Assembly (NCBI GenBank): GCA_030704615.1
Contig: CM060731.1
Span: 8,990,001-9,054,000, forward strand
Length of the DNA stretch: 64,000 nt
Origin: Takakia lepidozioides
Taxonomy: Eukaryota; Plantae; Bryophyta
Direction of reading: 5' to 3'
Of this stretch, positions 3,404 to 36,224 are shown in pieces. The translations under genes were made by a program, and so were the position numbers. The notes under the pieces are model-generated. The model was not told where the DNA came from, did not search any database, and was given only the letters and a program-made list of their open reading frames with translations. Numbering within the stretch: the stretch's first letter is position 1; each line of letters opens with the position of its first letter.

Positions 3404-4129
3404 GGAGGCCGAGTATGATCCACCACCCCCCTCCCTGCGACCTGATGACCCCACCCAAGCCCGCGCCCTAGCTGAGCTTCTAGCAGCACTCTCCAGAGCA
3501 CCTATGCCGGCGGATCGCTCCGGCTCCACGCCTCCAGGGTCTACGGAATCCTTCTCCGACCCGCTCCCCTCCTGCTCCCCTCTCCTTCCCCCGGCCCAGC
3601 TTACCAGTTGATGATCGCTATTTCGTCTCGACCCTTGCCCTAACTCCCTCTCTCGACTCGACACCCAACACGCATGTGCCTCTCTCTCTCTACCCCACCC
3701 TTCCGATTGCTCGCTCTCCCTACACTCCTCGCTCCCTCCAGGGACTCTCCTCCCTCCTCTGCTCCTGTCGGCCACGTCGAATGCATATAGGTCCCACCCT
3801 CTCTCCTCCTCCCTGTCTTCCTTCCCTGCGAGCTCCCGCAGCTCGTCCTTCTCCGGACCCGCCAGCCTGCTATCTGGGACGTCCGGACTCCTTCTTTTCT
3901 GTGCTATGTGTATCTGTCTCTGTATGCGTATGTACTTTTGTGAGTTACGCTCCAACCCTGTGAGCACGGGCCTCTCTGCAAGACTATAGACGAAAGAGGC
4001 CCTGTGAGCTCAGCGATGGTGGCCTTGAGTGTCGTGGAAGGAAGCGAGCGGGCCTGCGCGCGCGGCCGCTCGGGGCTGCAGCCCTCGCGAGTGTATTGCG
4101 CTTTGCGATTTCCCTTCTCTGTGGGCCCC

Positions 4130-11970: not shown

Positions 11971-14699
11971 TAGAAGCTGGTTTTGATGCCAGGGGTCAGT
12001 GCATGTCGCTCAGCCCTGATGTATATAGCTATAAGTTTCATCTTCTTCTGTGGTCATTAGTAATTTTTTCATCTATTGTTCCTCCATCAGTTATTCTAAG
12101 ACCAAACCCACCAAGAGGGGATCAAACTCGGAATTTTGGCAAATCGTGGTCCTCCTACAAGGAAGAGCCTAATGAAGAATGGTAATAAGGGTTAATTGTT
12201 GACTCATTCAGAGGCTCAGAGCCCATCAAATGTTTTTATTACACAACATATTCCATGGGGGTCTGGATTTTACATTCACGGACAAGTGAAAACTCAAAAC
12301 CATGTGGACAATGCAAATGAAAGTATCAAGTAGACGTTAGTAATTCAAACAAGAAATATAATTCAACATGTGTGTAGTTCGGCATCAATTACATGCCACA
12401 TACAATTGCGTCCATACGTTAAAGTATTAAGGTGAAGATAAAGATTGTTTAACATCCAACCCGGTTGAATGAACACTTCCGCATACAATGCCCCATTAGG
12501 TATGTTCATCTCATTATATTTCTCGCAATTGCTTTATTTCTAATTTTTGCACCCGAACTTCTTTGGCTGATTGGACAGGTTTCTCCATTACTCTATTCTT
12601 ACTTTTTTCACACAGGTTGGGGTGGGGCTCTTTGTAGGTGGGTTCAGTTTTTTGAGGGGGTGGTTAAAAACAAATTGTTAGAATTTTCAGAGGACTTGAA
12701 CACCAGCAGTGAGATTGTGTGAAGTGTGAACGTGCTAGAAAACAGAGCAAGTCGAGAGGTACAAAGCAGCGAGAAAGACAGGCTACTGTACTGGAATGCT
12801 CTATGAATAGCCACAGGGCCCAAGAGACAGATGGGTGTGTTGTGGAACCGGGACCTTTCTGCCAGCTCCATGCAGCCTCTTTCTGAGCGTGCTCCATCAG
12901 CTCATATGGATTGTCAGTTCGTCATCGTGTCAAACTGCGATGTCATCATGTGCAGTCCCGAATGCGGGCCAAAAACATTTTGACCTAGTGTGCCAGCGAT
13001 GTGACATCCTGTGCGCCTCGTCCCAACCTTCCAAAAAGGAAAAGGGAAAGGAAACAAACTTGACAGGGCCCGATGGCTGATCATGCATGCAGGAAATTAA
13101 TCCAGGAGGAACAAAGTTGAAAGCACACCTCAGGAATGACGTAAGATGTCCACCAGTACGAAATGCGTCGTATCCGAAAGAAGCAAGCGATGGGTGTGCC
13201 CACCCCAGCATCTTGTGCGCCAGGTGCCACAGACGGAGAAGAGACGGCAGCGTGCACGCTTTTAGCCTTTCGATGGGAGAGCCCCACCGCTGGTACCACT
13301 TGGCGGCATTTGACTTTCATCTTCAGATTATCTCCCATGTTTTCAAAACTGACAGTGTGTGCACTTTCCCTACACTGTAGATCGACTCCTGATCCAACCA
13401 CATTTTCTTCAAATATTGTAAAGAATGTTGCAGCATGCAGACCTTGCCATCGTCCATTCCGGGTCTTCGGAATCCTTTGTTTGTAGTGAACCCGAACCAC
13501 TTCGACATCCATAGAAGGCATCCATAGAAACGCTGCTCACCATTTCTGCAAGCAGATGGTTTCTTGCAATTGGGTGGACACCCACACTCATATTCAACGT
13601 GGTGGGTGCCGGAAGGGTCTGATGCGCAACTGGTTCAGCAAACTCGTCCTTGGACATGCTACAAACACTAGCAGACCATATTATAAGGCACAAGCAGCAA
13701 GACGCAATACTTACCTTCTGCATGCCAGAGCTAAGGCTTCAAATGGCAAACTGCACTAAGAAAGCAGAAGGCTCATGAATTGCTCCGCAGAACAAGCTCA
13801 GCGCGGGCCTTGTAGAAAGCAGGCTACATACAGCTATGCTGCTGCAAACAGCTAGACACTCATTCCGGTAAAGCACGGAGTCAACCCAAACTCACATAGA
13901 ATGTACCAGCCTTCTTACCAAAGAATGCATGAACAATCACCAAGAGGATGAGCTGATGACATAATTACATGGAGACTGAAATTCTAAGTTTACCCAGGTA
14001 CTGAAATCAGAACTTTCTGCAATCCTAGTCTGAGAAGACATGAAAGAATACTCAAGCTTGCTGCATTGTCTCTACTTCAAATTCATCAACAAAATTGTGT
14101 CATGGTACAAGCCTGTGCTCAAGAGATAGTTACGTATGAAATGCAGAGGCTTATAGCAATGTTGGTTTGGCTATAGTTTGTGGCAAGAGTTGCCTGCATA
14201 CACAGGTCCCATGTGATTGCTGAAATTTTGTACCGTGACTATAGGGTACTTCAAGATGCCCACATGCTCTTTCAATTGAATAAGCTCTTAAGTAGTTAGG
14301 CTTGCTTTGGCCGAGTCCTCTCTCTTTCTATCTCCGACGTCCTGGCAGCATGTAGGAATAACCCTTATCCTGAAGGGGACCGTTACTCGCTCGACCTACT
14401 TTACTGGGGCATGCTAATGCAGCCGCACGGTCACTCTTCACACTCTCATGGATCGATTTCTTCAATTTTCGATCCTTTACCTTTTGAAGAATACAAAGAA
14501 AGAGATTAAAAGGCCCTTTCACAGCTTTAAACAAGTTGAAACGATGTGTACTGTTTATAACCACCTCAAAGGCAGTCAGGTTAAGAAAACAGTTGGGAGG
14601 AGGCAGGAGCTGCTACAAAATTGATTGTCCAATTATTAAGCTTGCAACCAATGTCTTTGTTACTAGGAATGGAAGCACTTAGGCACAAGTAGGCAATCT

Positions 14700-15060
14700 T
14701 GTCAATACCCTTACATTTTGAACGAGACCATGAAGGTCACAATATGAAACCTCATGGCGCAGCAACCATGATGCACAGGCCATGAACCCTCATGGCTCAA
14801 CCTCATGGCGCAGCGACCATGAAGATTAAGTCATGGCCCCTAGACCATGAAGCATGACGGAACCATGAGAGGGAATGCGCGACCATGACGGGGAATAGCT
14901 AGGAGCATGAGCGAGAACGCGACCATGACGGGAATGCGACCATGAGCGGGAACGACGGACCATGAAGGGGAAATCGAAATCGAACCATGATCATGGCAGT
15001 TAAGCAATGAACCAAGAACAGAAGAGTGCAAGCAAGAAAGGGGTCCATGGGATGGTTGCA
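14700..15060 (+). mobile_element. 5' LTR, piece 1 (CCATGA-rich), homologous to ~35090-35430
   Basis: Colinear similarity, e.g. ccatgagcgggaacgacggaccatgaagggga vs ccatgagcgggaatgacggaccatgaagggga; begins TG at 14700. Confidence 0.75.
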
Positions 15061-15064
15061 AGTG

Positions 15065-18000
15065 CACACCAGAAGGAAAATGTAGAATAACCACTCTATC
15101 AACCACTCATTTTGAGTGGTAAAGGACAAGTAACCACTCTGAGCCCTGCAGTGATAAAGAACCAATGGATTTCGTATCCCAGTGGTAAAAGACATAACGT
15201 GTCACCAATGCTTAAAAATAATGGTTACGGCTAGTGGTTACGGCCACTGGCCTCTCGGTCCACCTGTACGCTGAATGTGCCACAGTGGTAAACTAACCAC
15301 TTTTGAAATGTGGTGGACGTAGATCAATGCAGAGACATTGATGAAAATGCAGATTTTGATGGTAGGCACCCTCTATCTTATCATATCAGCCCATACCTAG
15401 GTTATTAGAGGTGCCACAGCTCTAAATAAAGAAGAGCTGGCTATGTTGGCTATCATTCAAGCGGTATTTGTGCAGCCAACCGCTATGAATGTTTACAGGA
15501 TGTGAACAAAGTCTATTTTGAGATGAATCAATAGAAAAAAAAGAAAATACCCTTGTGCTGAGAAGTAGAAGAGAAATGGAATTACTGTCTGGTCCGGAAG
15601 CAGGGGGTGGGGGTGAAAGTGTGATCTATAACCAGATTTTCTATAACCTCCACTGGACAGTGGAGGTTTATTAGAGACATGATGAAACAATCGGGCGGAT
15701 GAATACACATGGATGAATTATGGCTACGTGATTGATATGGAAATGACGGATGAATGTGAGCATTGACGCAACTTACCCACATCTGGAGGGATGGCGAAAT
15801 ACAGAAATTGGAGAGATGGACAAATACAGGGAATGGAGACTATTGGCCTGAAATTTCTATACGTGTAGGTGAGAAATATACGGTACGGGAGAAAATGCAG
15901 TTCCCACGAGAGATTATGGAAATTCAGAGAGGTACGAGACGATGACGACAGAGGTACAGGATGTTCAGAGAGGTGCACTATGGGCAGTGAGGTGGGAGAT
16001 GACCAGAGAGGTACGGGAAACACAATCTGCAAGTGAGAGGTATGGAGGTAGAAGTGTGCACAGTGTGCCTGGACCTGATATAGAGGGTGGAACCTAGCTT
16101 ACCCGCTGGCACCCCTCCAATGGGATAGGCGATACATTGTCTTGCGGATATTGCCGTGCCGTGATATCCGAGTATCGCCACAACGAACGGTTTGGCATGG
16201 CAGGAGTGATGCCAACTTTTGAGCGATTTCGGAATTGAGTGTCCATTACTAATAACACCCTATGATGCCAGAACGATAACGGATGATAACGGTGGTTTAA
16301 TGATTTCGTACTTGTTCTCATAAAGCAGTAGGTATTTCTCGTTCAATGTTGTCCTCGTGGATCGAAGCCTGACGCCGTGGATAAGCGTTTCATGAAATCT
16401 TGCAGCCATGACACCCTGTAGAGAATGCCGGCGAGACGTAAAGGAAGCTGTTTGTTGTAACTGGAGTGATAGAAGAATTATGCCAAGCCAGAAACCGCCG
16501 AATGTACACCTTGTTCAGGATCAATAATTCCAGCCGGCTAAACGCCACAGGTGGATCTGACTTGTACATTCCATTTATCGTCATGTGTGTGGTGTGGGAA
16601 ATATCCCGCAGGGTTATAATTACGGAGGAATGATCCTCTGCAAGGGATTATTAACGTCATATTTTTTCGTTCATTCATCCGTTTTTTTATTTCATCTAAT
16701 CATTCGTCAAATGAATGGATAAAATGGAAATGATGAATTGGATGATATTTGCATGGATGTTGATGGAACAGCGCGCGACCGTTCGATTTCAAAGGACGCG
16801 ATGGTTCAGAATCCTCTGCAACAGGCACCATATAAAGACGGTGCGCTCGTTCAGCCCACCCTTTCAGCACTCCATTGTGTACGAGGAAGCGCTGCGGAAG
16901 TGTGAAGAGAGACAAGCGCTTAGAAAGAGAGAGTTTTGAGGGGGGGAGAGCGCAGAGCGTGCAAGAGCAGAGAGCGTGATGTGCAGGGTGCCGTGAGAGT
17001 AGAAAGAAGAGAACGTGCAGTGTAGTGCAGTGTGAGAGTGCAATGGAGGGAAGCGGAGCAGACAACGGATTCAAGCGAAGACATGAGGCGGGAGGGAAGA
17101 AGAGCGAAGGGGAAAGCGGAGCGGTGGAAGCTTAAGGGTCAGGCGTTTCAGGTCAGCAACAAGGGCACCAAAATGGCTCAGGCATCTAGCTAGGAGTAAT
17201 CTACTTGTTTACTCGTTTCTCTCTGAGTTGATGTGTTCGTTTGCTCGCTCTGGCTTTGTTCTTTACTGGCTCGGCTCTTGCTGATTTTGTTATGCCCATA
17301 GTTTCTGTGCTCTATGATGTTTCAGTGGTCATCTGATTTGTTGATCATTGTTTTTTTTGTTTTGTTGTTGCTTTTGTTTTACTGTTTGTTGGTCAGCATC
17401 GCCCACGTCGCTGTTGGTTGCTTCTGTTTTCTCATTCGCTTTCATTCCAGAGGTTATAAAGCACCATTTGTTTCTCGCATGTCACGTTTCGTGAGTATCA
17501 TGTCTTGTTTGATACGAAGCATCTCATTTAAATTCATTGGTTCCCTTACTGCAAGCTGTTTCAATTAGTTGATTGATAAAGTTGTTTAGTGTTCAATCAT
17601 TGATGTTTCTTGTTTCATTCATTGATGTTTCGTCGCATTCCGGTTCATGTAATCTGCAGGTGTGGTTGTATGGTGGTTTGAAGGGTGGTGGTAGCCCGGG
17701 CAGGTTGGTGGTGTTGGTTTACTGGATGTTTGGTGCTGCTAAATTATTAGGGTTATGGATTAGGCTTACGACGGGTTAGGATCATGGTTTTGTGCGATTG
17801 GTTTTTCGAATTTCTGATATTTGAAAACGGGTTTTTCTTCGGGCCTAGGCTACTCTAGTAGCCTAGTCTCCGTAGACATCTAGACCTCTAGTAGATCTCC
17901 ATGACGTCCAGCAGGACAAATCACACGAACCTCGCCTGCCTAGTGGAGGTTCATGCGTGTTCCTATGCACAACATAAGGATGTATTGAGATAGACTTATG

Positions 18001-21000
18001 TCGCTGCCTCCCCTGCATTGATTTTCTGTTCTGTCAGTATAAAAAGAAGGTGCGTAGGAGTGCACACGGTGGCCGAAGATGGTTCCATTACTGGTTGTGT
18101 CGAAAACAAAAATCTCCAAGAAGAGATCTGAAACTCAAATTTCAGATGTGGGCTTTGACGTGCGAACCTTGATAAATCCGGGCACTGACGCATCAATATA
18201 CGAGGGAGTTAGTCGACGGGAGACAACGGATGAAACCGAGGAAGAAAAAGATGAAAGTGTTGACTGCAATCTTCAGTCTGATTCAGACGATCACATTTAT
18301 GTAGGATATACTGAATAGTCCCTTGGATCCGTCCTTCCGTCCTCTCCCGGATACAGTCCTAACTCTCCGCAGTATCCAGTATCTGTCCTCATAGTTTTTA
18401 TTTGGTGGTCTGACTTTTTATCCTCTCTCATGTTTTCTTCGGATCTATTTTCTCCCATGAGAACCAGGCGTTTCCCAAAGTCGTTATATAACGTCATTTT
18501 CTTTCCAAATCTCATAGGGTGTACTTTCAGCTTTTTTTTTTTGGCTATTTAGGATTTTGGATTAACACACATTTTTTTATACCTTGTTTATTACTCCTAA
18601 ACCCTTACCATTTTTTGCAAATGGCCCATGAACTATTCATACCATAACCATAGCCATAGCCATAACCATAACCATTATGGTTATTGAAATGTCTTCTCCC
18701 TTCACTTTTACGCTAGGTTTTTCTTTTGTTTTGGATTGACATGCACTTAGGCAGGTTATAGTTTGCTTTCTATGTTACATCTTAATACCAGGTTCCAAGG
18801 ACGAGTCTTGCATTTAAATACTTGTCCATAATATTAGGTTCTTCATATTTATTTTATTTACTACCCTACTAACAACACTGACTTCTAGCGACTGGAGTCT
18901 TCCATAAGTGTTTGTCTATTTTGTAACTCAAACAAAAACCCTAAACCCCTACCCTAAACCCTTACTATAAAACCCTAAACATTTACCCTTAACCCAATAC
19001 CCCAGAACCCTTACTATAAAACCCTAAACATTTACCCTTAACCCAATACCCCAGAACCCTTACCTTTCCTTTTGCAAATGGGAATCAACTATCCATACCA
19101 TAACCATAATCATTATGGTTATCCAAATCTCTTCAATGTATCCAAATTTTCATTTTGTACCCTAACAAACACTAAGTTGTAGCGAGTGCGAGTCTTCCGG
19201 CATGTATGTTCACCATTTGTGTCTTCAACCCAAACCCTAACCCTCGTCGAAAACCCTAAACAAAACCCTAAGCCATTATTACGTCTAAACCCTTACCCTT
19301 CCCCTGCAAATGGGAATGAAGTATCCATATCATAACCATAACTATTACGGTCTTCGCCCTTCACTTTGCGCTAGGGTTTGCCTTTGGTTTGGATTGACAT
19401 GCACTTACCTTTTTTTTATCGAACTTTGCTTTCTAGATATGTATCTTAATACCACGTTCCAAGGACGAGTCTTTCATTGAAATACTTGTCCGATGCAATG
19501 ACTACACTTCCATAATATTTGGTTCTTCATTTTTATTTTGCTTACTACCCTACTAACAATATTAAGTTGTAGCGACTGGAGTCTCCCATAGGTGCTTGTC
19601 TACTTTGTACCTTAAACAAAAATCCTAAACCCCTACCCTAAACCCTTATTATAAAACCCTAAACATTTACCATTAACCCATTACCCCAGAACCCTTACCC
19701 TTCCCTTTGCAAATAGGAATCAACTATCTATACCATAACCATAACCATTATGGTTATCCAAATCTCTTCAATGTATCCAAATTTTCATTTTGCACCCTAC
19801 TAACACACACTAAGTTGTAGCGAGTGCGAGTCTTCCGGCATGTATGTTCACAATTTGTGCCTTCAACCCAAACCCTAAACCCTCGTCGAAAACCCTAAGC
19901 AAAACCCTACACCATTATTACGTCTAAACCCTTACCCTTCCCCTGCAAATTACCATAACCATAATCATTATGGTTATGTACCCTTATGGTTATGGTTATG
20001 GTTATGAAAGTACCCGTACCCCTACAATTACCCTTACAAATGAGAATCAACTATCCATACCATAACCATAACCATTATGGTTATCCAAATCCCTTCGTTA
20101 TCCAATTGTTCATTTTGTACCCTTCTAACCCACACTAAGTATAGAGCGAGTGCGAGTCTTCAATGTTTGTTCACCATTTGTATCTTAAACCCAAACCCTA
20201 AACCCTTTTCTTAATCCCTCACCTTACACCCTAAACCTTTGTCGTTAAGCCATTATTACGTCTAAACCAATACCCTTCCCATACAAATGGAAATGAACTA
20301 TCCATACCATAACCTTAACCATTATGGTTATCCAAATGTCTTTCACTCCATTTTTGCGCTAGTTTTCTCCTTTGTTATGGTTTGACATGTACTTACCTTT
20401 GCATAGTGTGCTTTTTATGTATCTTAATACCAGGTTCCAAGGACGAATCTTCAATTTAAATACTTGTCCGGCCCAATGACTCTTCCATAATATTTGTTTC
20501 TCAATTTTTATTTTTATTTTTTATCCTACTAACACACACCAAGTTCTAGTGAGTGTGAGTCTTCCATATTTGTTTGTCCATTTGTACCGAAAACCCTACC
20601 TTTACCATCAGCCCTAAACCATTAATCTTACCATAAACCAAAAACTTTAGTGTACTACCCTAGTTACACTCCAAACTTTATTGTACTACCATGTTATCTA
20701 GTCTTCTCAATGTTTTATGCTCTTTTAATATTTTCTTTTGTTGGATAAGGTATGATAGAATGATTACATGGATATCAAATTCCTCAACTATTTCTTAATT
20801 AATTCTACCGAGTGTGAGTCCATCATATTTGTTTGTTCCTTTGTACCCTAAATTCAAACCCTAAACCCTTACCTTTACTGTAAACCCAAACGTTATTGCA
20901 TTTCTCTCTAGTTACACCCCAAACCTTATTGTACTACCCTAGTACCTCTTCCCAATGTTTCATGCTATTTTAATATACATCCAAAACATGATTCATTCCA

Positions 21001-22293
21001 ATGGCGTGATATGTGAACATTATGCTTGATATGAAGATTCAATCAATAAAATTACTAGCAAGTTGTATCGAGTATGGTAGAGTACGAGTCTGCCCCATGT
21101 TCGATGCGACCCATTTGTTTATCGTGATTACATAATAGAATATTACATTATTCGACTTCCAAGTGGACGTTCAATGAATTATTCAGTACTACTACTTCAC
21201 AAGCACTTCAATGTCAAATGGATCTCTATTTTGAAACAAGTATGACATCACCTGTAATTTCACAAAGTTCAATCACACATTACACCATGATATATATTAT
21301 TAATTAATTTTAATTCAAATATATATTAATTTTAGTCCAGATATAAGCCAAAAGTCCAGAATTAATAAAATAGTGTTTATACAATATTACACGTTACTAA
21401 GTGGTTGGGGGTATTTGCAGGATTGGGTGTCTTAGTTTTTGCGTAACATGGCAGTTTCTGCAGTGACCTCCCTTCATGGTTCGTCTATCCATATTTGTCC
21501 AACAACTCAATATTTCATCTAAATTTATATGGTATGGGTTTCTAACTACAATAGGTATGTGTACCAATTGTTAGATAGCAAAAACAATTATGTACCAAAG
21601 AGCCATGGACTTTTAAAGTTGATTAATGTGGAGTGCACATAAAATCTTATGGACGGAGAAAACCTCATGTACACTCATACAATGGCACAAAGGAAAACAC
21701 ACTAGAAGTTAGGAGTGCCAATTTTAAATCCAACCCAAACCCACTTTTATATGGACTAGTTATCTTGGGAATTGAGAGCTATGGACTATTTTGCACCTAA
21801 AAACATGTTGATTTGCTCTAGTCCATAGCATCTTATGTTTTGGGTTTTTGAGGTGTCGTCTTTTACTAAAAAGGCATATAAACCTATAATCTAGAGGTGC
21901 CAGGTGGTATATGGACAAGTGGATGTAAACTCTAGATTTTGACGTCTAAATATTTTTTCAAATTAAAGATTAAAATATCTAGTAAATAATGTTTTCAATA
22001 TTTGAGGAGGGACTCTTTACTAAAAATGTTATGTATACTACTATCTTTTTTTTTATAAAATAAATTGAAAGCAATAGACTCAAAAATAATAATTTCCATG
22101 GACTTCCAATGGACTCAACATGTGCCGCTTTTGATCCACCCAATCCTGCAACTGCCCTTGGAACCACTTCCAACCATTTCATCTGATACCACCGTGACAT
22201 TTCATCGGGATTAACCACTTTTCAGTGGTTACCATTATTGATGAGTGGTTTATAGAGCGGTAAAAGATAGGAGGGATTAAAAGGGCAGTGGTA
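15065..22293. mobile_element. Segment with clusters of ACCACT/AGTGGT subterminal repeats at both ends (CACTA-like architecture, no clear terminal TIR)
   Basis: accactctatcaaccactcat (15090) vs atgagtggtttatagagcggt (22241-22261, inverted); many aaccact/agtggt motifs at 15088-15300 and 22212-22292. Confidence 0.45.
18560..21100. repeat. AT-rich higher-order tandem repeat (~300-bp subunits, ~660-bp dimer) with AAACCCT telomere-like and CCATAA runs
   Basis: Recurring gcga(c/g)tg(c)gagtct at ~18888, 19182, 19572, 19821, 20146, 20549, 20809; ccaaggacga at ~18795, 19459, 20436; exact 49-bp tandem duplication at 18957-19063; no long ORFs. Confidence 0.85.
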
Positions 22294-22306
22294 ATTAAAC
22301 AGGTGA

Positions 22307-23881
22307 TTGTCAAGTCTCTACGGGAACCGAGGAGTGAAGATGCCACGCCTTCGGACGCTACAGGCAGAAAGTAACATAATGTCCATTATCAACGGAAATA
22401 CTGACCTCATGCCCCATAAGACAAGGTGCATTGGGGAGGGAAGGAGGGATACTTTGAGAGTCTTACCACCTGAAATGAACTGGAAGCGAATACGATAAGA
22501 GTCCAACGAGGTAAGAAAACTCTCTCCTTCAAATTTCTTCCTGGAAGTTTTTTGTGATATCAATGTGAATGGTTCCCTGAGAATGCGTCTCTTTTCCACT
22601 GTTGTTCTAGTTTCATGAACCTTGACTGCCCAGTGGACGTTCATTTTCTGAACCTTCATGATTGTTTCAGACGAACAGACTTTTCAGGTTGAAAGGAGTC
22701 TCGTAGTCGGCTGTTAGCCGCATCCGGAGTCTGATATTTCCTAACGTTGAGGTTCGAAAAACTGGGAGCACATTTGCGAAGTGTACGGAGTGCGAGATAT
22801 TAAAGGACATGATCAAAAAGTCGGTCAAGAGAAGTGCGGAACATATTACATACAAACGAACGCTTGATAAACATTGAGGCACCAAGAGTCGTGTAGAAGA
22901 CTATACCATAGCTGGAGGAATGAGTCTGTTATGATTCCGGAGGAGTTTCTCTGTATTATTCACGACAAAATGGATCATAGGGAAACAGCTATTCCAAGGC
23001 TCCAGACTCCAAACAAGATGATTTCAGGATTGGGTCAGCTGCCAGTTTCACTAACTGGAATGGTCACGCACGGACACGATGATGGAGCTTACGGTCAGTT
23101 CTCTCTTGAGTTCTGGAAGGGAAATTCAAACTTTACAATTGGGTCCTTGGCACGTTGCCTACACCAGCTGGAGAAGCCAACCTGTCGCGAGTCCAGGAAC
23201 ATTTTCGATTATGGACTTCAAAACGAGTTTTTCGAATCACTCTTAAGAGGTAAATCGAGATGTTTGGATGCTCTTAAACCCTACAGGCCGGAAGACAAAC
23301 AAGGTGCTCGTCCACTTCCAAGAAGACTCTATTTGCAAATGGACAACTCCGCGAAGGACAATGGGAACATATGGATGCTTGCTTTTCTATCCCTCCTGAC
23401 CGCCAAAGATGTTTTTGAAGAGATCCAGCTAGGGTTTCTAATGGTCGGACACACCCATGAGGACATCGACGACATCTTCAGCTACATCTCAAAGAAGCTA
23501 AAGGAACGAAGCACCTACATTCTTTGGGATTTGATGAGGTCATTCATGACTTCGCAAGATCTGCAGTTCATTCCACAGATTATTCAGGAGGTTCTCGATT
23601 TCAAGAATTTTGTAAAGGACTGTATTCTGGATGGAAAAGAGGCGTTGGTCGGGATTTCGGAGATGCATGTGTTCCGATTTTTTAAGGATGCGGAGGGTTG
23701 GCCCGTCATGAAGTACAAGAAGTCAGCTACTAATTTGGATTGGCTTCCAACAAACAATAGCGTCAAGATGTGGAAGTCAAATCCTGACAGGACTCGCAAG
23801 CTCCCTGAAGGAGACCTAGACGCCATTCCGAGAAGACCGATCTGGGGAGTCGGGGACGAGAGAAGCATGGATCTCGGCTAA
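22307..23881 (+). pseudogene. DDD-type (Sola1-like) transposase, C-terminal/catalytic half
   Basis: YGNRG..DLMPH; intron 22511-22670; FAKCTEC; LCIIHDKMD (D1), LYLQMDNSAKDN (D2), FLMVGHTHEDIDDIFS (D3); in-frame stops and a frameshift near 22873. Confidence 0.8.
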
Positions 23882-24436
23882 GTAGTGCGGGGGGGCCATG
23901 TATTCAGTAGAGAGTGGTGGCATCATGGAGTGGGTGGAGACCAAGAAAATGAGATAACCCAACAGACTTTGAAAAGTACAGAGACTGTTGGTCAAAACTT
24001 TGGGAGTATAACTTGTCAGATATTGCTCAATGGATCCACGTGAACAATGTTGTGTGGACCATGCCGCCACGAAAAAATACGACAAGGAATAGCACTAAGA
24101 GAATTACAGCCACGGAAGTAGTGAAGGTGCGTGCGAATTTGGAGGAGGCCAATCGTCAGTCAGAAAGTGAGTCTTTCGAACGAGTTGCAGTCTAAGGACA
24201 AAATGTTGAGGACAACTCCGGTACTACGATTTAAGAAATAAATTTTTCTTCTCTAGATGTCCCTTCTTGTTTGCGTTGGGGGCTCTTTTTTGTTATCTTC
24301 TACTGTTGCACTGAACCTCGAGTGTCCAGTGGACATTCTCGACCTTTGTTTCTAGTGTGCCGGATTCTGGCCTGCTGTACTTCCTGTTCAACGATGAAAA
24401 ACCCTGTGGGGGAGTCTGGCCTACATAACATAAGAA

Positions 24437-24580
24437 ATTTCTCCAAAATATGTCACCGCTGATTCTCCCGAATACGTCCCTGCAGATTCTCCCGAGTACG
24501 TCCCTGCAGATTCTCCCGAGTACGTCCCTGAAGATTCTTCAGAATACATCTCTGGAGATTCTCCCACATATACCTCTAGA
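24437..24580 (+). repeat. 6 x 24-bp tandem repeat encoding (DSPEYVPA)n-like peptide
   Basis: gattctcccga(a/g)tacgtccctg(c/a)a units at 24461, 24485, 24509; degenerate units at 24437, 24533, 24557. Confidence 0.9.
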
Positions 24581-25167
24581 GAGTACTCCCCGAAAACCCT
24601 CAGGATGATTCGAGAGAGCCTCCTCTAGTTATTGTAGATATAAGGGATGAACCTCAATTTACAAGAATATATCGAATTCGTGTAGGTATTATGTATTAGG
24701 TATTTGAACAATTTTGAGACCGGATGATGTATGGAATGGCGAGACGAGCCTTATCTGAATAAATGTTTTTTTCTTCTTATGAGTGAACTGTTTTTTTCCT
24801 CCTGAATAGAATTCTTTTATCTGTCAGCTATGAGAGTGTGTAGTGGTGAACCTCCACTGGACAGTGGAGGTTAATGTCTTAGGAGTCTTGGATGATTGTT
24901 ATGGATATGTGTCTGACGTCCGAGGTGGTTTGTTCTGTCGACAACAACATTACCCCCCGAGATTGTCTTGTTGGAATGTGCAAACCTGAGTGTGGTTCAT
25001 TTGTTTCTTGAAAATCTCCGAATTTCAAGAATGATCACCTGGCAATTTTTGAGCTCAACCTGGAAATCACAGAATGGGGCATCGTCCCCGTTGGAACACC
25101 TCCGGACCATAAGTTCCGGTTCCACTACAAGGTTGGTGCAAAGGTCGCCAAGCTCAAATATGCAGAT

Positions 25168-26860
25168 GTGGTCGACGTAGAGCTGGAGATGGAGGTCGAA
25201 TTTCCGATGCTGGTTATTTTCATGATGAAGGATGGTAGATTCCCCAGAACGTTTGGCTTAAAACTGGAGGTACAACTTCTAAGGAAGGCCATGATGAGAG
25301 AGTCCATTCGGATGGGGTTCACATATTGCGACGAGGGTACACAATTTACAGATGAAGGTCTTTGCATGGCTTGGGGTATTTTCTTGGATGTGTTTTACTT
25401 AAAGGGTAAGGAAAATGCAAAGCCGCGGGAGGAGGAGGCTGCGAGAGCGCGGCCAAGGAAGAGAAAACGGAAATCCTCTGACGCCGGAGGTGATAAGAAT
25501 GAAGCCGGGACATCCAGGGGAAAGAAGAAACAAAATGAGGACATGGATCCCGCTTTCATGACAGATAACAAGAAACCCAAGGCTGCAGACATCTTTGACA
25601 AAGAGAATTGTGAGAAGTGCAGGAGAGGCTGGAGCAAGACTACAAGGACATGTTTCCTTTTGGGTTTGAGGCGACCCAGGATGTCAAAGTTTCCATGATG
25701 GAGCTTGCTCCCAGGGATATGGTGTACAGGCCCCTAAATGTCAAGCACAAAGACGAAATCAAAGCGCGTCTTTACCAGCTCCGGGTGTTCGACTCCAAGC
25801 ATCCAGTTTATTTGAGTCCCGCAAACCCCGAGAAGCCTATGGAGGTTTCAAGTTCGAAACCTCGAAACTAGAAGGAGGTGGAAAACTCCAAATTCTTCGT
25901 CATCGGTGGACAACACACGATCATTGCTGCCAAGGTAAATTTCTCCACAAAATCCAAATTTTGTAACAACATGAACCTCCACTGGACAGTGGAGATTCAT
26001 GTACTTTAAACATTATGCTTGTTAGGTCGCTAGCATTTCTAACCTTATTCAATTCTGTCCCAAGAACTTGTTGAAGACGTGGACGACGACAATCTTAAGA
26101 AGTACTACTCTGACTGGCCCTCGAAGATTATATGGTCAAAGGATCTGATGAGGCTTGTGAAGCTATCTAAGCTCCTAAACGACCCAAATAAGTCGCAAAA
26201 ATTTGACACAACATTCCCCGAGAAAGTTGCACATGCCCGGAATTTCTTCGAGCTGAGGGGGAGGCCGAAAAAGTACAACGATCACACAACGAAGTCGGAG
26301 ACTAGACAATGGAAGGTAAATGATTCACAAACAAATTGCAACGGTTTATTATCGACGATGTAATGGAAGTCTTAGGTGGCCTCGGAGAAGCAAACAAAAC
26401 CAGGAACCGTACACCAAACTGGAGTGGCGTGATGTGAAGAAAAAATACAACTTCAATAAAGCTAAGTTTGAAACTTTTCGAGATCGGCTCGGGAACGACT
26501 ACATTGTAAGCAAACAGAAGATGAACATGGAGACGCAACCCATGACTGCTGCTTTCAAAAAGTACGTCTTGTCGTGCAAGCAGACCTTTGAGGATAACCA
26601 GAATGCACTGACGATTCTATGTACGAGCTTCAAGTCCCATTACACACAGCTGGGGGAAACCTAAAATTTGTTGATGCCAGATCTCGGTTGGGACTTGCAC
26701 TGAAGAAACGGTTTGACGACATATTGACGGTGTTTGTCAATACAGTTTGTGATGATGACTCGATTAGGCTTCAAGGCAAAGGACCACTCCAATATCCTGG
26801 ATACTTTTGTGGCTTGGAAGCTCATGTCCAGTGTTTTTGTGTTTTTTTCGACACAAGAAT
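25168..26860 (+). pseudogene. ParB/Sulfiredoxin-like (GGQH motif) protein gene with basic NLS-like region; spliced and decayed
   Basis: YRPLNVKHKDEIKARL...HPVYLSP...*KEVENSKFFVIGGQHTIIAAK|ELV read through a stop at 25869 and an intron at ~25935-26063; RPRKRKRK upstream. Confidence 0.6.
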
Positions 26861-27580
26861 CATCGGGAAATCTTGTGTCATACATTCGGAATGTTCCCAA
26901 AAGGCTGCTGGCATGGGAGACATCTGTTGGTCTGGCGGAGCCTCTAGAAAGTCCTCGGGCTCCGACTTTCCAAATTCCTCCCGTTCTTGAGCGACCTCGC
27001 TTTCAAAAGCATAAATCGCCTCTTCCATTTGCCGCTTCGGTGACACATCGCCCCCACCGGGCTCACCAGGATCATCGTCTTTCAGGCCGTTCTGCTTTCG
27101 CTTTGTCTTGCCCGACCCCATGGTGAGGCCGACCTCAAGGACGATTTCCTACTGAACTCTAAGCTCTGATACTAAGTGTCGTGCACTTCACTTCGGTAAG
27201 CTCCCCTTCAAGTCATAATTACTTGTTTTGATGCGCGCGCCTAACTTCCAAATTGGCCGCCGGGCCAACTCGGAGCTTCGGCTGCTCACCAGGACATAAC
27301 GGTCCCCCTTTGCTTCTCCACAAGACCCTCGCTCACTTTGGGCCTAGTGGAAATTCCCTTTGGTTGTTGGCAGTCCGGAACAGCTCCCCACACCTTGGTC
27401 GCTTTCCGGCTCGCACGCTTACTCACTAGTTTTTGGTTACCAATGGGCTTGCACCGTTCTCGGGGTTACTACTCCCTATATATACTTTTGTGACTGTCCG
27501 CAGGGGTTTCACAAACAACACCGTCCTTTTATGGCGAACCACCACGAAGACCCTTGACTCCCGGTGATGAGTCGCATCTT
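26860..27580 (-). mobile_element. Truncated LTR retrotransposon remnant: LTR 3' end (CA at 27178-27177), tRNA-iMet PBS at 27174-27163, start of a gag-like ORF at 27121
   Basis: Minus strand reads ...gacCA-like end, ct, TAGTATCAGAGC (one mismatch to the canonical TGGTATCAGAGC), then ORF MGSGKTKRKQ; outer limits approximate. Confidence 0.65.
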
Positions 27581-27712
27581 ATTAGTCTTTTGGTCTTTGA
27601 GTCTTTGAGTCTCATCTTCGGTATTGCTCAATTCGATTATTTTGTTGGATCACTTTGCCCACTATATTTCTCATCCGTCGGATTCCAAAATATGCTGTAG
27701 AATCGTGAGACG

Positions 27713-28118
27713 ATGTCTGAGGAGATCAAACACACACGAACCGACTCCATCGAGATTGAGACGGTGAAGAGACAAGTGGATCGGACAATCACTGTCGGCC
27801 CACCTGAGCCGGTCCTACAAGTAACCTCCACTGGACAGTCGAGGTTGCCATCTGGTAACACAGGGTTGGAGGATAGTATTTTCCGGAGAGATGGAAAAAA
27901 GGAGGAGCAGCCTGCTCAAGGATCCCAGTAGCCGCCCCCGTAATCATTTCAACTCATTTTTTTCGTTTCTCTACATTGGGCTTACTGAAGTTGAAATTAA
28001 TAATGAACTCTTCTGTTATTCCACAGGACAACATGCATTACCCTCCAGTCGACTATTCCATTTCTGTCAATCCAAACGATCTGCATTACCTTCCTTGGGG
28101 ACCGAACGGATGTTGGTC
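27713..28118 (+). pseudogene. Unknown element ORF 'X1' (MSEEIKHTRTDS...), paralog of the ORF start at 32845
   Basis: HTR..TVKRQVDRTI..PEPVLQVTSTGQSRLP vs HTR..TVKRHVDLTI..PVPVLEVISTVQSTLP; probable intron at ~27940-28026. Confidence 0.45.
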
Positions 28119-28433
28119 AGGTCTCTCTACACAGTGTTGGAGTCCAAATCAGGGTTGCTTTATAACTTCATGGTATACAAAATAGACCACAATCTCTGGT
28201 CTCTAGCTACGTCAGCTTTTCTAGTCTACTCCGGAGCTCCGTTATCGGCCCATATCTCACTCCCTCTACTCTGTTCTCTATCTCACTGACGTCATTCTCC
28301 TTCGCTCCTTCGCTCGTGCCTCAGTTTTATCATCCCATGTGTACAATAAGAAATCCATTTCTTTCCTTTCACTCGCCCAAGTACCCTCATGTCAACCGCC
28401 ATAATAATATCTCCGTGAGCCAACCGCCATGAC
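28119..28433 (-). mobile_element. 5' LTR, piece 2 (inverted), homologous to 35431-35935
   Basis: Reverse complement matches, e.g. ctattttgtataccatgaagtt..ggactccaacactgtgtagagagacct and acgtcagtgaga..agagggagtg..atatgggccg. Confidence 0.85.
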
Positions 28434-28435
28434 TC

Positions 28436-29506
28436 CAACTTTTTGTACTCCATGTATGCAGACCTCCCAATTCCGTGAATTGTCCACCACGCAGTCTCAC
28501 AAACATCTACATCCTCAATCGTAACGTATGCCCTGCGAGAGGTCCCTTCAAGCATGTGAAGTCGATTTGAAACATTTAGTCCATGTTCTCTCCTCTCATC
28601 GAAAGTGGATCCCCAAAACGAAGTACGGATAGCCAAGGTTTTTCGCCTATCGAAATATTGACAGCAGTGAAGTCTGCAGCAAGGTTTGCTGCTCATGGAT
28701 CGGACTTCCTCCATAGTAAGATTTTTCATACATTTTTTGGAATGTTCCAAATCTCGATCCCTCTTCTTCCTCGTAAAATGCCTATACGCCGCTTTCTTCC
28801 CACCTGTCTCATGATCTTCGTATTCATTACTGTCAGAAGATCTTATGAAATTCTCAAGATCATTTGAGAGTAGTCTTTCCAAAAGTCGTGTTTTTATTGA
28901 AGGCCATTTTACAAGGGGCATTAGAGAGCCAGATCCAGCAATAAATATTTTGGTGACAAGAACTCCAACATCATCCTCTCCCAGTTTGTCATTGAGAATC
29001 ACCTCGTCCGGAATAAAAGCTTGAATCCTGCCCTCGAACAATGCACACCCATCATCACCCAACTGTACGCATTGCAAGTTTATCCAGTTGTTTCCTCCAC
29101 ACGAAATCTCGGAACTCTGCGATGGTCTATGGTTTGATTCATCCTCGTGGACATCGAAATTATGTGCAGTCTCCTTTGTCTCTGACGTAAAACCAGGATT
29201 CATGTCATGCCCTTGATACTCGTTATTCTGCTGATGAACTTCGCTAACATTCCACACCACCGGCGGGGTCCCAATGGCCTCCTTCAAGGTGTCAACATCC
29301 ATATGTCTATAAGGCAGAGGACATAATGCGTGTGCTTCATCACAGGAGATGAGTAGCACTGAAATGGTTGACGAAGATAATTGGTGTCCATGAAAGGTCC
29401 CAACCTTGGAGACATGTAGACCCGGGAAGAGAAAAAAAACACTCTTTGACCCGTCTCTAAGCTCATGATCAACGGAACCTCCACTGTACACGCGAGAAAT
29501 CTTCAA
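28436..29506 (-). pseudogene. N-terminal half of the Sola1-like transposase (Cys-rich region), broken at the inversion junction
   Basis: KPCCRLHCCQYF..RTSFW..VCETAWWTIHGIGRSAYMEYKK, then an abrupt switch into LTR sequence; this motif set normally precedes the (H/Y)GNxG found at ~22320. Confidence 0.65.
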
Positions 29507-30661
29507 GAAACTAAAAACCCATTCGTAACAGCCTTACTATTACAGTTGAGGAATTTTATTTTATTTTTTGGGGAAAAACCGATGGAAGGGCCGGATAATG
29601 TTAATAAATATGAGGAAAAAATAACCTTGAAATACAAGCCATGGAGGCTGAGAAAGGGGACACCACCCCGTGACCACACCAATTCAGGGTCAGGATGTGT
29701 CGATGTTGGAGATGTTTTGTCATTGAACGACGGGGGGAGTAGATGGGCAACAACAGGCAGACACAGAAAATTGTCCGTTGAGCACTTGACATCCTGGATG
29801 GAATGAAAACGCAACGAAGGAATAATTTATCTCGGAACTGCATTCCAATACAGACGTTGTTTGACATGAAGGTCATAATCTACAGATTTTCTTACCTGGA
29901 GTGACAGATGAATATCAGACCCCAAACTAAGTGAAACTAGAAGAATGAACAAGGAGCGAGAAATGAGTTTAAGTCACCTGACTCATGCGGATTTGGGCTA
30001 TCCAACCCTCGTGCTGGGGAGATATGCGAGGAAGAGACGGAACAAGGTGCATCAGAGCCCCAGACAAGTCTTCGACGGTTGCCCTTCGCGTTGGATAGAC
30101 CAGACCCTGCGTACTTAACGGGGAGAGTGAGGAATGTTGGGTAAGGTCGATAAAGTTTCCGGCATATTTTTGTTCATCATCTACACCTTGGACTTTATAC
30201 CTAGGAGGACCCAAGATGAGAAGAATGTCGCCCGCTTCCTGAGAGGAGAAGGGTCTGACTGAGGATCCACCCTCAATTTGAGCACCATCCTGAACCCTCG
30301 GAAAGCCTTCAATACTTCGACGCACTACTGATCCGGAGGGTTCCCTGAGGGGACGTGAGGAACCATTGACGTCGTCAGCATCTCCTTGAACCTGCCAAAG
30401 AGACATAATCATCAATCCGGGAGTGCAGGAATGTGAACCTCCACTGAACAATGGAGGTCACTAGATATAGTCATGTACCCGTATGAAGGCATGTATGCTC
30501 TGGTCTTGGGATTGCCCCAAATGTACGTCGAAAAATTCAACAGCAAATTAGTGAAAATGAGAGTACCATATCTAATACGTATGTGATTACAAGACAATGA
30601 AAATCAGACACCATGAAGATATTCAATAGCTCGAGTGAGAGGGGATTAATCAAAAATATAT

Positions 30662-31275
30662 TTATTTTGAAGCATCATATCTTAGGCTCTTAAAACCGCT
30701 GTCCTCAATATAATCCCAGAGTGGCCTAAACTTGGGATCACTTGAAACATTGGGAAAAAGACTCAACCCTATCATCTTTTTCCTAAGATAGCTTGAAACA
30801 GTGGGATGTTTCCTCATTCCAAGCAAATAGGTCTGAAGAACCTTGAGAAGATAGCAACCATTGGTCTCCACAGTTTGGAACGGCTTGAGAACAAGACATG
30901 AGTCGGGCGGGTTCAATACACACTTCATGGCGGTGTCGTCAATGAGCAGAGTGTTACTCTTGGTGTACTGTCCACCAAATCTCTGCCAGACTTTCATCAA
31001 TGGCTTCAAAAACAAATGACCGGTTGAAGGAGACCACGAAGCAAAAAATCCAGGATGGGCTACAAGTTCTTGTACATCATAGAGCTCCAAATCCCTAACC
31101 GGAAGTGTTTGTGCAATTCTGTCCACACTTCGCGATATTTCTCCCGTCTAAAGACAAGTTGGAATCCAACAAGAGCTAGAATTCTGTAGTCTGTTTCTGA
31201 AAACCGGGGGATATTGTAGCTCTTCTGGTGCTTCAAGATTTTGCATAAGACTCCATTCACGTTAAAAAATAATCA
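30662..31275 (-). pseudogene. FCP1/NIF-like HAD phosphatase domain, copy 2
   Basis: LFFNVNGVLCK..LGIWSSMMYKNL (frameshift) ..LFLKPLMKVWQRFGGQYTKSNTLLIDDTAMKCVLNPP. Confidence 0.8.
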
Positions 31276-31493
31276 AACGCAACCCTTGCACAGGTGGAGA
31301 AACATGTGCTCCAATCTGCTAGCGAGTCATTCATACTTCGGATGATAAAAATGGAACAGTACAATGCATTGGAAAAACCGATCCCAGGCAAGTGAACAAG
31401 AACGTCCACCGGACAGCCGAGGTTCACTAAACTCTTTTAAAATATCTTATGTCCCATTCCACCTTCCTGCTGGAAGGCAGTAGCCCTTCGAGA

Positions 31494-32456
31494 TCAAGTG
31501 ACACCATAAGTTACGCTCCCTTCGAGAGACGTCATACTTTTTTCTTTTACTTTATGTTCCAATGAATTGGCACGCAACTCGTGATTGCTAAGGAATTTCT
31601 GCCACCTATAATCAAAGTCTCTAAGAAATTTGACCGTTGGGTCGTCCTCGAAGAAATCCTTCGTAATACCGAACGGATGTAGCTCGTTGAATGACATGAT
31701 ATCCATCCCGGATAACCGCAATATGTTAAGGTAAGGCTTGAGCTCTTCCAGTAGAAACTTATCTCTGTCAGGATCCACGAGCGCTTTATATTTTGGAAGG
31801 AAGATGGTATGTCCAAACGGGTTCAAGTAGGACTTGTACATATTCTCTACAGTGTCAATGAGGAGAGTATTGGATTTGTAAGCTGTAGGGTCTTCCTCAG
31901 CGAAAATCTCGTAGAGACGTTTAAAGTAGATCAGATTTTTGGGTGCTTTAGGCCATTTTGAGTTGAATGTCGATCTATGCATGACGGAATTCTCACTGCT
32001 GTAAGTTATGACCTTGAACGGCCTTAGCGATAGTCTCGACATTCATCTCAAGTCCCGTGTTCCAAAAACAAACGACAAACTTTTTAACGGCCCATTTAAT
32101 GAATTCGTCAAGACCGTTTCGCATAGCTAACTTGAATTTCCCTGCGGAGATACAAGGCTGGATGGCAAGAAGGGATTTCTTTCCATCCTTTAGGTAAACC
32201 TCACAAAGATAACCGATGTCCAGAACCAGGACGTAGTATCGCCTTAGCGGAAGTGGCATTAGCCACTCTCATCACGTTTTTCAACTGATGTGGGAAAGGG
32301 GAAGAGAGGGCCAGGAAATTTTCGGGTTGGAGACACTTGGGAGTACTCCAAATACCCAAGAACGCGTTGCGCCAGAAAGTGTCCACAATCTGGACAGCTC
32401 TTCCTCCAGTTTTGATAACACCACGAATCAAAATCCGGCTTCTCCAGGGGGGGCAT
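31494..32456 (-). pseudogene. FCP1/NIF-like HAD phosphatase domain, copy 1, preceded by a CxxC-containing segment
   Basis: VLVLDIGYLCE..RNGLDEFIKWAVKKFVVCFWNTG (frameshift) ..YFKRLYEIF..SNTLLIDT..SYLNPF..DKFLLEELKPYL; CPDCGH upstream. Confidence 0.75.
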
Positions 32457-32844
32457 GAAGCGACATCGACAGAGTTAAGTTGAAACCTTAGGTCAATGGT
32501 TCACACCTGTGGAAGGTGACGAGCCATTGATTATGTCACCAGCTCCCGTTAACAATCCTCGCGGGGTAGTGACCCAGAATGTCACCCAGGTGGTTCTGGA
32601 TGTAGGTAACGAATGACAATTAAAAAATATTTATTCATACATACTTCAGAATATAATATGACAATATTGTAATTATACAAACTTGTGAATGGAATAATCC
32701 GAATGTTTTTTCCATTTCTTTTATTCTGGACTTTCGAATAAAACATATTTCCACCCGGAATTTTGTCCGATCGCACATCCATGAGGACAACCACTAACTG
32801 TTTCAAAACTTTTCTTGTAGATCCAAGAATCCCAATCGGAGGAA

Positions 32845-33252
32845 ATGACACACACACGACTGGGCTCAAACGAGACTCAAACGGTGAAGAGACATGTGGA
32901 TCTGACAATCAGGGCCAGGTCACCTGTGCCAGTTCTGGAAGTAATCTCCACTGTCCAGTCGACGTTGCCATTTGCAGGGAATGAGTCGGAGAATCCTCCT
33001 ACTCGCGGGGAAGGAGAAGAGATGGAGCAGCACAAGCGCGGAATCCAACAACAGACCCCGATGCGGGTATTCCTTAAGGTAAAGCCTAAGGAACCCTGCA
33101 CCTTCGAGGGCATCCGAAATCAGAAGGCACTCAACACCTGGCTCTTGGAGTTAGAGCAATACTTCCGAGCGGCCAAGTTGAGGGACGAGGATCGGGTGGA
33201 AGTGGCTCCCACCTATTTGAAGGGCTATGCTCAACAATGGTGGCAGAAACTC
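32845..33252 (+). pseudogene. ORF 'X2' running in frame into a Ty3/gypsy Gag fragment
   Basis: KPKEPCTFEG..LNTWLLELEQYF..DRVEVAPTYLKGYAQQWW is a typical retrotransposon capsid N-terminal motif; the N-terminal part is paralogous to the 27713 ORF. Confidence 0.75.
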
Positions 33253-33579
33253 GTGGAATGTCTAAATAGAAGAAGAACTTGAACTAAATAGATCACATAA
33301 GTAATCATCAACTAGGATACCAAGTTCACTGTTAGACGAGAATGATCGTGAACTTATGAATAACAAGTTCATGATAGCCCATGATACACTAGGTTTGGGT
33401 TATGTTTGAGTGTTCTGAACAACTTGAAGACATGAAGATATAAACATATTCATGGTATCCAATGATATACTCGCTCAGGTGTGGGTCATGTTGGACTGTT
33501 CTGAATGACCTAAATACTTAGAGTATTCCTGCACCTCTACCCTTGAGTATCATCCCATGATAGTTAAGGGAGGCCAACA
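33253..33579 (+). mobile_element. 5' LTR, piece 3 (ends ...CAACA), homologous to 35943-36210
   Basis: acataagtaatcatcaactaggata..ttagac.agaatgatcgtgaacttatgaa shared with the 3' copy; followed by aTGG. Confidence 0.8.
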
Positions 33580-35047: not shown

Positions 35048-36224
35048 TGATGACCACTATTTTGCCCAACTATGGTAAGATGCAGGTACCTTTGAATGAG
35101 ACCATGAACGGTCACAAGAACCATGGAACCTCATGGCGCAACAACCATGGGTTGTTCTAACGCAACGGCCATGAATCCTCATGGCGTAGCAACCATGAAC
35201 TGTCGTGGTGCAACCACCATGAAGTGTCATGATGCTGCGACCATGACCTTAGATCATGAAGGACCATGAGCGGGAATGCACAACCATGACAGGAAACCAA
35301 GACCGTGAGCGGGAACGCAACCATGAGCGGGAATGACGGACCATGAAGGGGAACATGAACCATGGTCATGGCAGTTATGCCATGAATAACAGAAGAATGC
35401 AAGGCAAGAAAGTGCCCATGGACGGTCGCACTCTTGGTGGTTTGCTCCAAAAGAAATTATAGCAATTGACACAGGATGGTACTTAGGAGAGCAGAAAAAA
35501 TGAACGAGGGTTTTTTTACTATACAGGGGATGATAGAGAGCATGGACTGAGGTAGGAGCGGAGGAGAATAACGTCAGTGAGACAGAGAGCAGAATAGAGG
35601 GAGTGGGATATGGGCCGGTAACAGAGTTTTGGAATATACAAAGAAAACTGAACGTAAGACCACTTTGGATAGTAGTATCTCGCGGACTTCAGCTAGCTAC
35701 AATGACAACAATGTCATTCATTTTCTTAAAAAACTTCAATTTTTATAATCATGCAAGTCTTGCTTGATGAACATCCTAGAAACCGGGACCAATAAAATTA
35801 GGCGTCTGAATTAAGGCTCTGAGAGGAGATCTGCGCGGGGGGTCTAGAGGAGGCAGCAGCCTATTTTGTATACCATGAAGTTGTAAAGCAACCCCGACGT
35901 GGACTCCAACACTCCAACACTGTGTAGAGAGACCTAAGTGAAGCGAAATACTTAAACAGAAAAGAAGCTTGAGCTGAAGAGATTACATAAGTAATCATCC
36001 ACTAGGATACCCAAGTTTATTGTTAGACAAGAATGATTACATAAGTAATCATCAACTAGGGATACCCAAGTTCATTATTAGACAAGAATGATCGTGAACT
36101 TATGAAGATACCAAGTTCATGGTACCCCAGGTTTAAGTGTTCTAAACAACTTGAATACTTTAAAGTATTCTTGAACCTCCACCATGGGTATCCTCCCAAG
36201 AGCTAAGGGATAGGCGTGTAAACA
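35048..36224 (+). mobile_element. 3' LTR (~1.15 kb) with an internal 54-bp tandem duplication at 35981-36092
   Basis: Colinear with the three 5' LTR pieces; purine run agggagg precedes TG at 35048; ends approximate. Confidence 0.7.

Follow-up and report, generated by a model that had tools for sequence, protein, structure and literature searches.

The window, a 64-kb stretch of the Takakia lepidozioides genome (GCA_030704615.1, contig CM060731.1, positions 8,990,001 to 9,054,000), holds between about 15 and 33 kb a dead, rearranged copy of a multi-copy DNA transposon family of the Sola1 type (DUF7869). Positions are counted from the first letter of the window, and loci with L numbers are relatives found elsewhere. 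The C-terminal half of the transposase is encoded on the plus strand at 22293-24200 and contains the motifs CxxC, HDKMD, QMDN and GHTHEDID; it is colinear with moss loci and is interrupted by stops and by a frameshift at 22873, which is private to this copy, other family copies having an extra T at that place. The DDD transposase of the original prediction was confirmed, as the ORF at 22874-23878 was identified as a DUF7869 transposase (Pfam PF25273, E 2.7e-42). The N-terminal half, with an SH3-like repeat and a CC..CC cluster, is located on the minus strand at 28445-29506 and has been severed from the C-terminal half by an inversion, whereas the two halves are contiguous in L001-L006, L009 and L097. 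By eye, the motifs CC..C, MP, CxxC, D1, Q.DN...NKN and GHTH..ID match those of the published Sola1-1_Ec32 transposase. At L009:4-4151 a near-intact transposase (~1300 aa) was observed, in which the Cys cluster is preceded by three SH3-like repeats in tandem and the tail is Tudor-like. No transposase relatives were found in prokaryotic genomes.

The unit to which these halves belong is 10.6 kb long and reads NIF1, NIF2, transposase and accessory gene. NIF/FCP1-like domain 1 (31494-32260, minus strand) matched moss NIF domains with E 1e-8, and domain 2 (30662-31330, minus strand) also matched moss NIF domains, its Pfam NIF hit (E 0.008) falling below the cutoff. The catalytic motif DxDx(T/V) is not intact, reading LVLDIG in the window and DxNG-type or worse in moss copies. 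A 24-bp tandem repeat encoding SPEYVPAD, which is CTD-like, is present at 24439-24600 on the plus strand. The unit adjoins a separate 7.2-kb insertion, here called segment A (15061-22292), and the same palindrome occurs in both. Segment A is characterized by ACCACT-rich inverted subterminal motifs (8 and 5 per 300 bp at its ends vs a background of 0.25), a 33-bp inverted pair at 15090/22229, two palindromes, degenerate tandem repeats with units of ~250-400 bp and telomere-like CCCTAAA (18580-20900), and a short SPSSPGYSPNSPQYP-like peptide in a decayed ORF (18320-18385, plus strand), which resembles the Pol II CTD by eye.

Element boundaries and rearrangement history

Because the two transposase halves lie on opposite strands here and are contiguous in relatives, the stretch 22293-28440 was recognized as inverted. 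A host repeat is present in three pieces (14717-15060, 28440-28119 and 33263-33570), with an intact version at 35091-36210. Segment A separates the first two pieces, which form one unbroken stretch at 35091-35935. The piece borne by the inversion (28119-28440, minus strand) is of low copy number (depth 31-93) and does not belong to the family. This repeat (14717-15060, 35091-36210) is ACCATGA-rich and possibly an LTR, and ~1.5 kb of decayed coding sequence separates its copies. Both insertions target it. The simplest history, two insertions into the host repeat and one inversion of 22293-28440, fits better than the one giant element of ~15-20 kb that had been proposed; a single 18-kb element would need about three inversions and is less parsimonious. 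The junction at 28440 is unlikely to be an assembly artefact, since a contig covering 28077-28492, from a run that may represent the source sample itself, bridges it with 0 differences. The depth of the copy-specific contig bridging the inversion junction is ~45, depth being a rough guide.

Once the inversion is undone, the ~260-bp subterminal repeat at 27683-27941 (plus strand), with a palindrome at 27823, becomes the inverted partner of 32802-33061. The two repeats are identical at 174 of 259 positions (67%) and lie 180-200 bp inside each edge; their palindromes are symmetric, ~270-300 bp from the respective element edges, and the outermost bases of the two edges have only GAC in common. At 32802-33262 (plus strand) the second repeat, with its palindrome at 32943, is followed by a stub that is gag-like by eye and is cut at the element edge; the stub, near 33262, had no Pfam match. 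Sola1 elements make a 4-bp target site duplication of the AWWT type (PMC3845634). No target site duplication was found at 28118/33263, where ~17 bp of the host repeat are missing instead; in a rearranged copy this is weak counter-evidence. An LTR retrotransposon of very high copy number has left a nested fragment at 26890-27617 on the minus strand, comprising an LTR, a Met PBS at 27163 and a gag stub; the depth of this fragment in same-species contigs is ~100 times that of the transposon family. Within the 10.6-kb element, the inversion cuts the transposase and the LTR fragment the accessory gene.

The dispersed palindrome and its versions in relatives

The palindrome has the form AACCTCCACTG-NN-CAGTGGAGGTT, with 11-bp arms and a 2-bp spacer in a total of 24 bp. 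Ten full copies, each with 0-4 mismatches, span 15645-32966. Those of segment A are located at 15645-15668 (perfect) and 17928-17951 (three mismatches). The others lie inside the transposase intron 22511-22670 (22618-22641), at 24314-24337 (four mismatches), immediately 5' of the accessory gene (24849-24872, perfect), in the intron after its GGQH exon (25974-25997), at 30436-30459 (two mismatches), between both NIF domains (31401-31424) and in the two subterminal repeats. A perfect half-site is present at the transposase 5' end (29476-29486) and a weak relic at 21148. Of the predicted ~11-12 copies at intervals of ~0.5-3.5 kb, the dispersed array was recovered, as ten full copies and one half-site, and the spacing has to be widened, the largest gap being 4.7 kb (17928 to 22618). 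The prediction that no full copy lies elsewhere in the window held, as none was found outside 15.6-33.0 kb, flanking host DNA included. The array is far above chance: 0.05 hits per window were expected at <=5 mismatches from Markov controls, and 0.00 at <=3 mismatches from shuffles.

The sites stand in unique, mostly non-coding contexts, and their flanks are mutually unrelated except for the pair 27823/32943, which derives from segment duplication. Among the 20 half-sites there are 21 changes, 0 of which are symmetric or pair-keeping. Recurrent C-to-G changes were seen at arm positions 4 and 7, and their concentration at both positions was not significant (p 0.08). As the changes are asymmetric and none is compensatory, a tolerant protein site fits better than a hairpin. 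In diverged family members the palindrome is retained ~40 nt into the post-GGQH intron although the intron letters differ. No exact match was found in viral contigs.

Each of L001-L006 and L097, together with many moss loci, has its own dispersed palindrome, with 5-40 copies vs 2-4 in shuffled or host controls. The sequence varies by lineage, and every well-preserved relative, moss or liverwort, has its own version. The homologous transposase intron houses the family's own palindrome in the window, L001, L002, L003 and L097; no clear palindrome was found in that intron in most decayed Sphagnum-type loci. Two convergent DUF7869 transposases occur at L002:7500-15200 and at L004:8300-14700, and in L002 a different palindrome family lies 5' of each transposase, the two elements being 4 kb apart in one genome. 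The Riccia element L005, of ~5.6 kb, has 13-15 sites and no accessory gene was seen in it. The closest transposase (58% identity) was found at L097:1-8500 (ENA ERZ25039595 contig_2366), where ~40 copies of an 18-bp palindrome of its own are present. The locus abuts a bacterial dcw cluster (mraZ, rsmH, ftsI, mur genes). An intron in the gene and a jump in GC content suggest a chimeric long-read contig, which is the probable explanation, rather than a transfer.

The accessory gene

The accessory gene (24900-26891, plus strand) is composed of an N-terminal domain, a K-rich linker, a core of ParB-like motifs and a downstream domain, with colinear pieces in moss loci. One exon extends to 25935 and ends in GGQHT, and the next covers 26064-26315; the spliced gene holds YRPLNVKHKDEIK and FVIGGQHTIIAAK continued by EL. 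Its reading frame is disrupted near 25612 by a frameshift, at 25869 by a TAG, and elsewhere by further shifts and the nested LTR fragment. The stop at 25869 is private to this copy, 25870 being G in all other family contigs. Four pieces of the gene matched moss loci colinearly (E 6e-10, 5e-4, 2e-5 and 6e-8), and the intron after the GGQH exon has the same position in moss homologs, in which two or three NIF domains follow. Judged from these colinear matches, the common intron position and the NIF domains downstream in moss, the accessory gene is old and real. At L012:5834-6880, the moss palindrome is repeated in tandem ~25 times in place of the ParB-like part, upstream of three NIF domains.

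The homologs were reached only via the neighbours of related transposases in moss-associated metagenomes; direct searches with the window pieces (phmmer with exon 2, word search, Atlas features, metagenome patterns and phage tblastn) returned nothing. In the first homologs, L018/L020 and L050, the accessory gene is divergent from the transposase. A search with one homolog ORF added 49 further fragments and the loci L089-L095 and L099-L101. In a profile sweep of 93 transposase-positive sequences, a set with many short or redundant members, the gene was detected in three distinct loci besides the window (L018/L020, L050 and L089/L090), with profiles that were made from few sequences and could miss distant paralogs. 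Same-species contigs cover the whole stretch of transposase and accessory gene at depths of thousands, and the accessory gene tracks the transposase in depth. For 25637-25771 there is an 85% match in one contig of a run that is possibly RNA, a weak indication that a relative is expressed.

The original prediction described a spliced gene with a ParB/Srx-type core. The gene is present and conserved in moss, but it is decayed and had no significant ParB/Srx match. The motif order of the core is a strand, a YRPL..H...I helix, a P-hydrophobic strand and an F.I.G.QH helix. In HHalign comparisons with nine bacterial and phage ParB domains the motifs were in register, and the scores were no better than those of column shuffles for either exon. 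Stop-free single-exon pieces gave no significant ParB match in Pfam, NCBIfam, PHROGs, PDB, HHalign or AlphaFold, and all profile searches with this gene were run exon by exon, which limits their power. The AlphaFold pLDDT was 48 on the half-domain, and the quality of the 85-aa model was too low for its fold to be searched. It is the motif order that points to a possible ParB identity of the protein. At the position of the GxxRxxA box, the window and four moss loci read GGQHT, GRQHI, GRQHT, GQQHT and SGQHI, without the CTP-binding arginines; the GxxR box with which bacterial ParB binds nucleotides was not confirmed, the window motif, GGQHT, containing no arginine. No ParA-like ORF was found in the window or in related loci and element translations, by inspection and by Pfam on the main ORFs. 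As a candidate for the DPPY-like motif of a methyltransferase, LLDxHY is plausibly placed in the moss homologs, and the downstream domain had no methyltransferase match by Pfam, PDB, Foldseek, VIA or Atlas (pLDDT-50 model). In the window the LTR fragment interrupts the gene.

The expected co-occurrence of palindrome and GGQH gene was found in part. In L050, L092 and L093 the two are paired, the moss array lying directly upstream of the accessory gene and in its introns, but in most related transposase loci only arrays were detected. Arrays without a detectable accessory gene within 10 kb (L001-L006, L012, L039, L066 and L097) are evidence against the ParB-like protein as the sole binder; conversely, in L092, L093 and L099 the accessory gene is present and the surrounding 10 kb contain no transposase. 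The binder is therefore not identified by co-occurrence in cis, and arrays lacking the gene might be served in trans by protein from sister copies.

Candidate binders and related systems

The explanation that we favour, and to which we give about an even chance, is that the palindromes are family-specific operators for an element-encoded dimer and that this dimer is the accessory protein, serving self-recognition and anti-silencing or transcription control. The protein would bind DNA as a degenerate ParB-like type that lacks the chemistry of a CTP clamp. By marking the promoters and introns of its own family it may keep transcription on or shield the elements from host silencing, a role that parallels VANC on VANDAL by analogy only, and it could act in trans on deleted copies. 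The NIF pseudo-phosphatase and the CTD-like cargo hint at a link to RNA polymerase II, and the site sequence would change among lineages jointly with the binder. Operator sites are suggested by the asymmetric variation, the palindrome kept in a diverging intron and the private palindrome of each well-preserved relative. The accessory protein is a candidate binder because its ParB motifs are in register, the array lies upstream of and within introns of a conserved gene, and red-algal ParB-like genes beside arrays have been published; counting against it, no ParB match is significant and most related transposase loci have no accessory gene nearby. From the original proposal of a self-encoded binder with cognate sites, the element-restricted sites, the conserved gene travelling with the transposase family and the published precedent remain, and a ParB/parS CTP clamp is not supported.

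Other roles for the palindromes were weighed against this one. That they are DNA or RNA hairpins, neutral relics or host-factor binding sites is unlikely: they are inverted repeats by nature and two copies came from segment duplication, but a loop of 0-2 nt does not suffice for a hairpin and, with no compensatory changes, that role was rejected, and a host factor would be at odds with a sequence that differs even between the two neighbouring elements of L002 and is missing from the flanking host DNA. In bacterial ParB/parS and the IncP KorB/OB system, about a dozen dispersed palindromic sites accompany a mobile element encoding a ParB-type protein. The Takakia element is alike in its number of dispersed palindromes, which are of parS-like size, and in a self-encoded protein with ParB-like motif order; it differs in having a spliced eukaryotic gene, no significant profile match, GxxR arginines replaced in 5/5 homologs examined and no ParA in the window or related loci. 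A true analogue, in which a CTP-dependent sliding clamp would load at the palindromes and condense the element or partition an extrachromosomal form, as originally proposed, is accordingly very improbable.

The transposase is a more serious competitor, possible although we consider it clearly less probable than the accessory protein. Either the SH3-like repeats at its N-terminus or the Cys-cluster/HTH region would contact the palindromes, so that the transposase autoregulates or distant ends are helped to pair, and the accessory gene would have another function. The arrays flank the transposase and share one of its introns in five loci including the window, two transposases go with two palindrome families in L002, the Riccia element has its sites and no visible accessory gene, and two window copies are symmetric about the element. 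However, internal palindromes are not the usual targets of DDD transposases, which mostly bind asymmetric motifs at the termini, and arrays also surround accessory genes that have no nearby transposase. Moreover, pairs of ParB-like gene and array have been reported on Plavaka elements, whose transposases are unrelated (bioRxiv 10.1101/2025.02.11.637652).

The system cannot be called new as such, as ParB-like accessory genes on giant algal transposons were published in 2025. In Ectocarpus, the 21.5-kb Sola1-1_Ec32 contains a ParB-methyltransferase gene, and proteins of this kind were proposed to act on the transposon that encodes them, by binding and modifying it (PMC12477816); a green-algal precedent is given there by reference (Iyer et al., 2011, as cited in PMC12477816). 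What the Takakia element has in common with it is the giant Sola1 type, an accessory gene that is ParB-like, the same transposase motif series and imperfect terminal repeats, of ~280 bp in Sola1-1_Ec32 and putative in Takakia. In the latter element of Ectocarpus, a recognisable N4/N6 methyltransferase forms one protein with the ParB-like domain, whereas the downstream domain examined here has no methyltransferase match; in addition, the Takakia element has NIF domains, CTD-like peptides and dispersed palindromes, and palindromes are not mentioned in the text of PMC12477816. In Bostrychia, Plavaka elements (PAG3) have a ParB-like accessory protein (weak HHpred, E 0.29) beside inverted-repeat arrays, and self-binding was proposed (bioRxiv 10.1101/2025.02.11.637652). 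The accompanying arrays are the likeness; the EnSpm/Plavaka transposase, the 2OG-oxygenase fusion and a tandem array next to the gene are the differences, the Takakia element having single palindromes spread through introns and spacers. The targets of the VANC protein of Arabidopsis VANDAL are family-specific motifs that lie in introns and non-coding regions, and the motifs turn over between families (PMC5735166), as do the palindromes described here. VANDAL is a Mutator-type element with short non-palindromic motifs and an unrelated protein, whose function was shown experimentally. According to the Bostrychia preprint (bioRxiv 10.1101/2025.02.11.637652), VANDAL/VANC is the one system for which binding and modification of the encoding transposon have been demonstrated.

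In the open-access literature, no paper was found on land-plant DUF7869 elements, family-specific dispersed palindromes or NIF cargo, so the land-plant Sola1 version, its NIF and CTD-like cargo and the dispersed palindromes turning over by family are apparently unpublished. The ParB-like accessory proteins of algal transposons are candidate binders, and the Takakia family supplies means for testing, with a defined 24-bp candidate site, many lineages with differing sites and two candidate binders; the window copy itself is a pseudogene. More speculatively, a Sola1 lineage widespread in seed-free land plants might use a bacterial-derived ParB-like protein, CTD-phosphatase-like domains and Pol II CTD mimics to read a family-private palindrome and to shield or activate its own family only, a scenario that we hold to be possible but rather doubtful. 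If true, this would be a second, independently evolved sequence-specific anti-silencing system and a natural set of orthogonal protein-operator pairs.

The remainder of the window contains a probable pogo/Tc1-like transposon (7878-11977) with 31-bp inverted ends and a frameshifted HTH and DDE ORF on the minus strand, and a long imperfect inverted repeat with arms of ~300 bp (49632-50546), which is a MITE or hairpin RNA candidate. Host genes were recognized by eye for a LOB-domain factor (3032-3967), a Rab7-like GTPase (37900-39300), a PPR protein (43330-44736), a VQ protein (53598-54398) and a cytidine deaminase (56821-58467).
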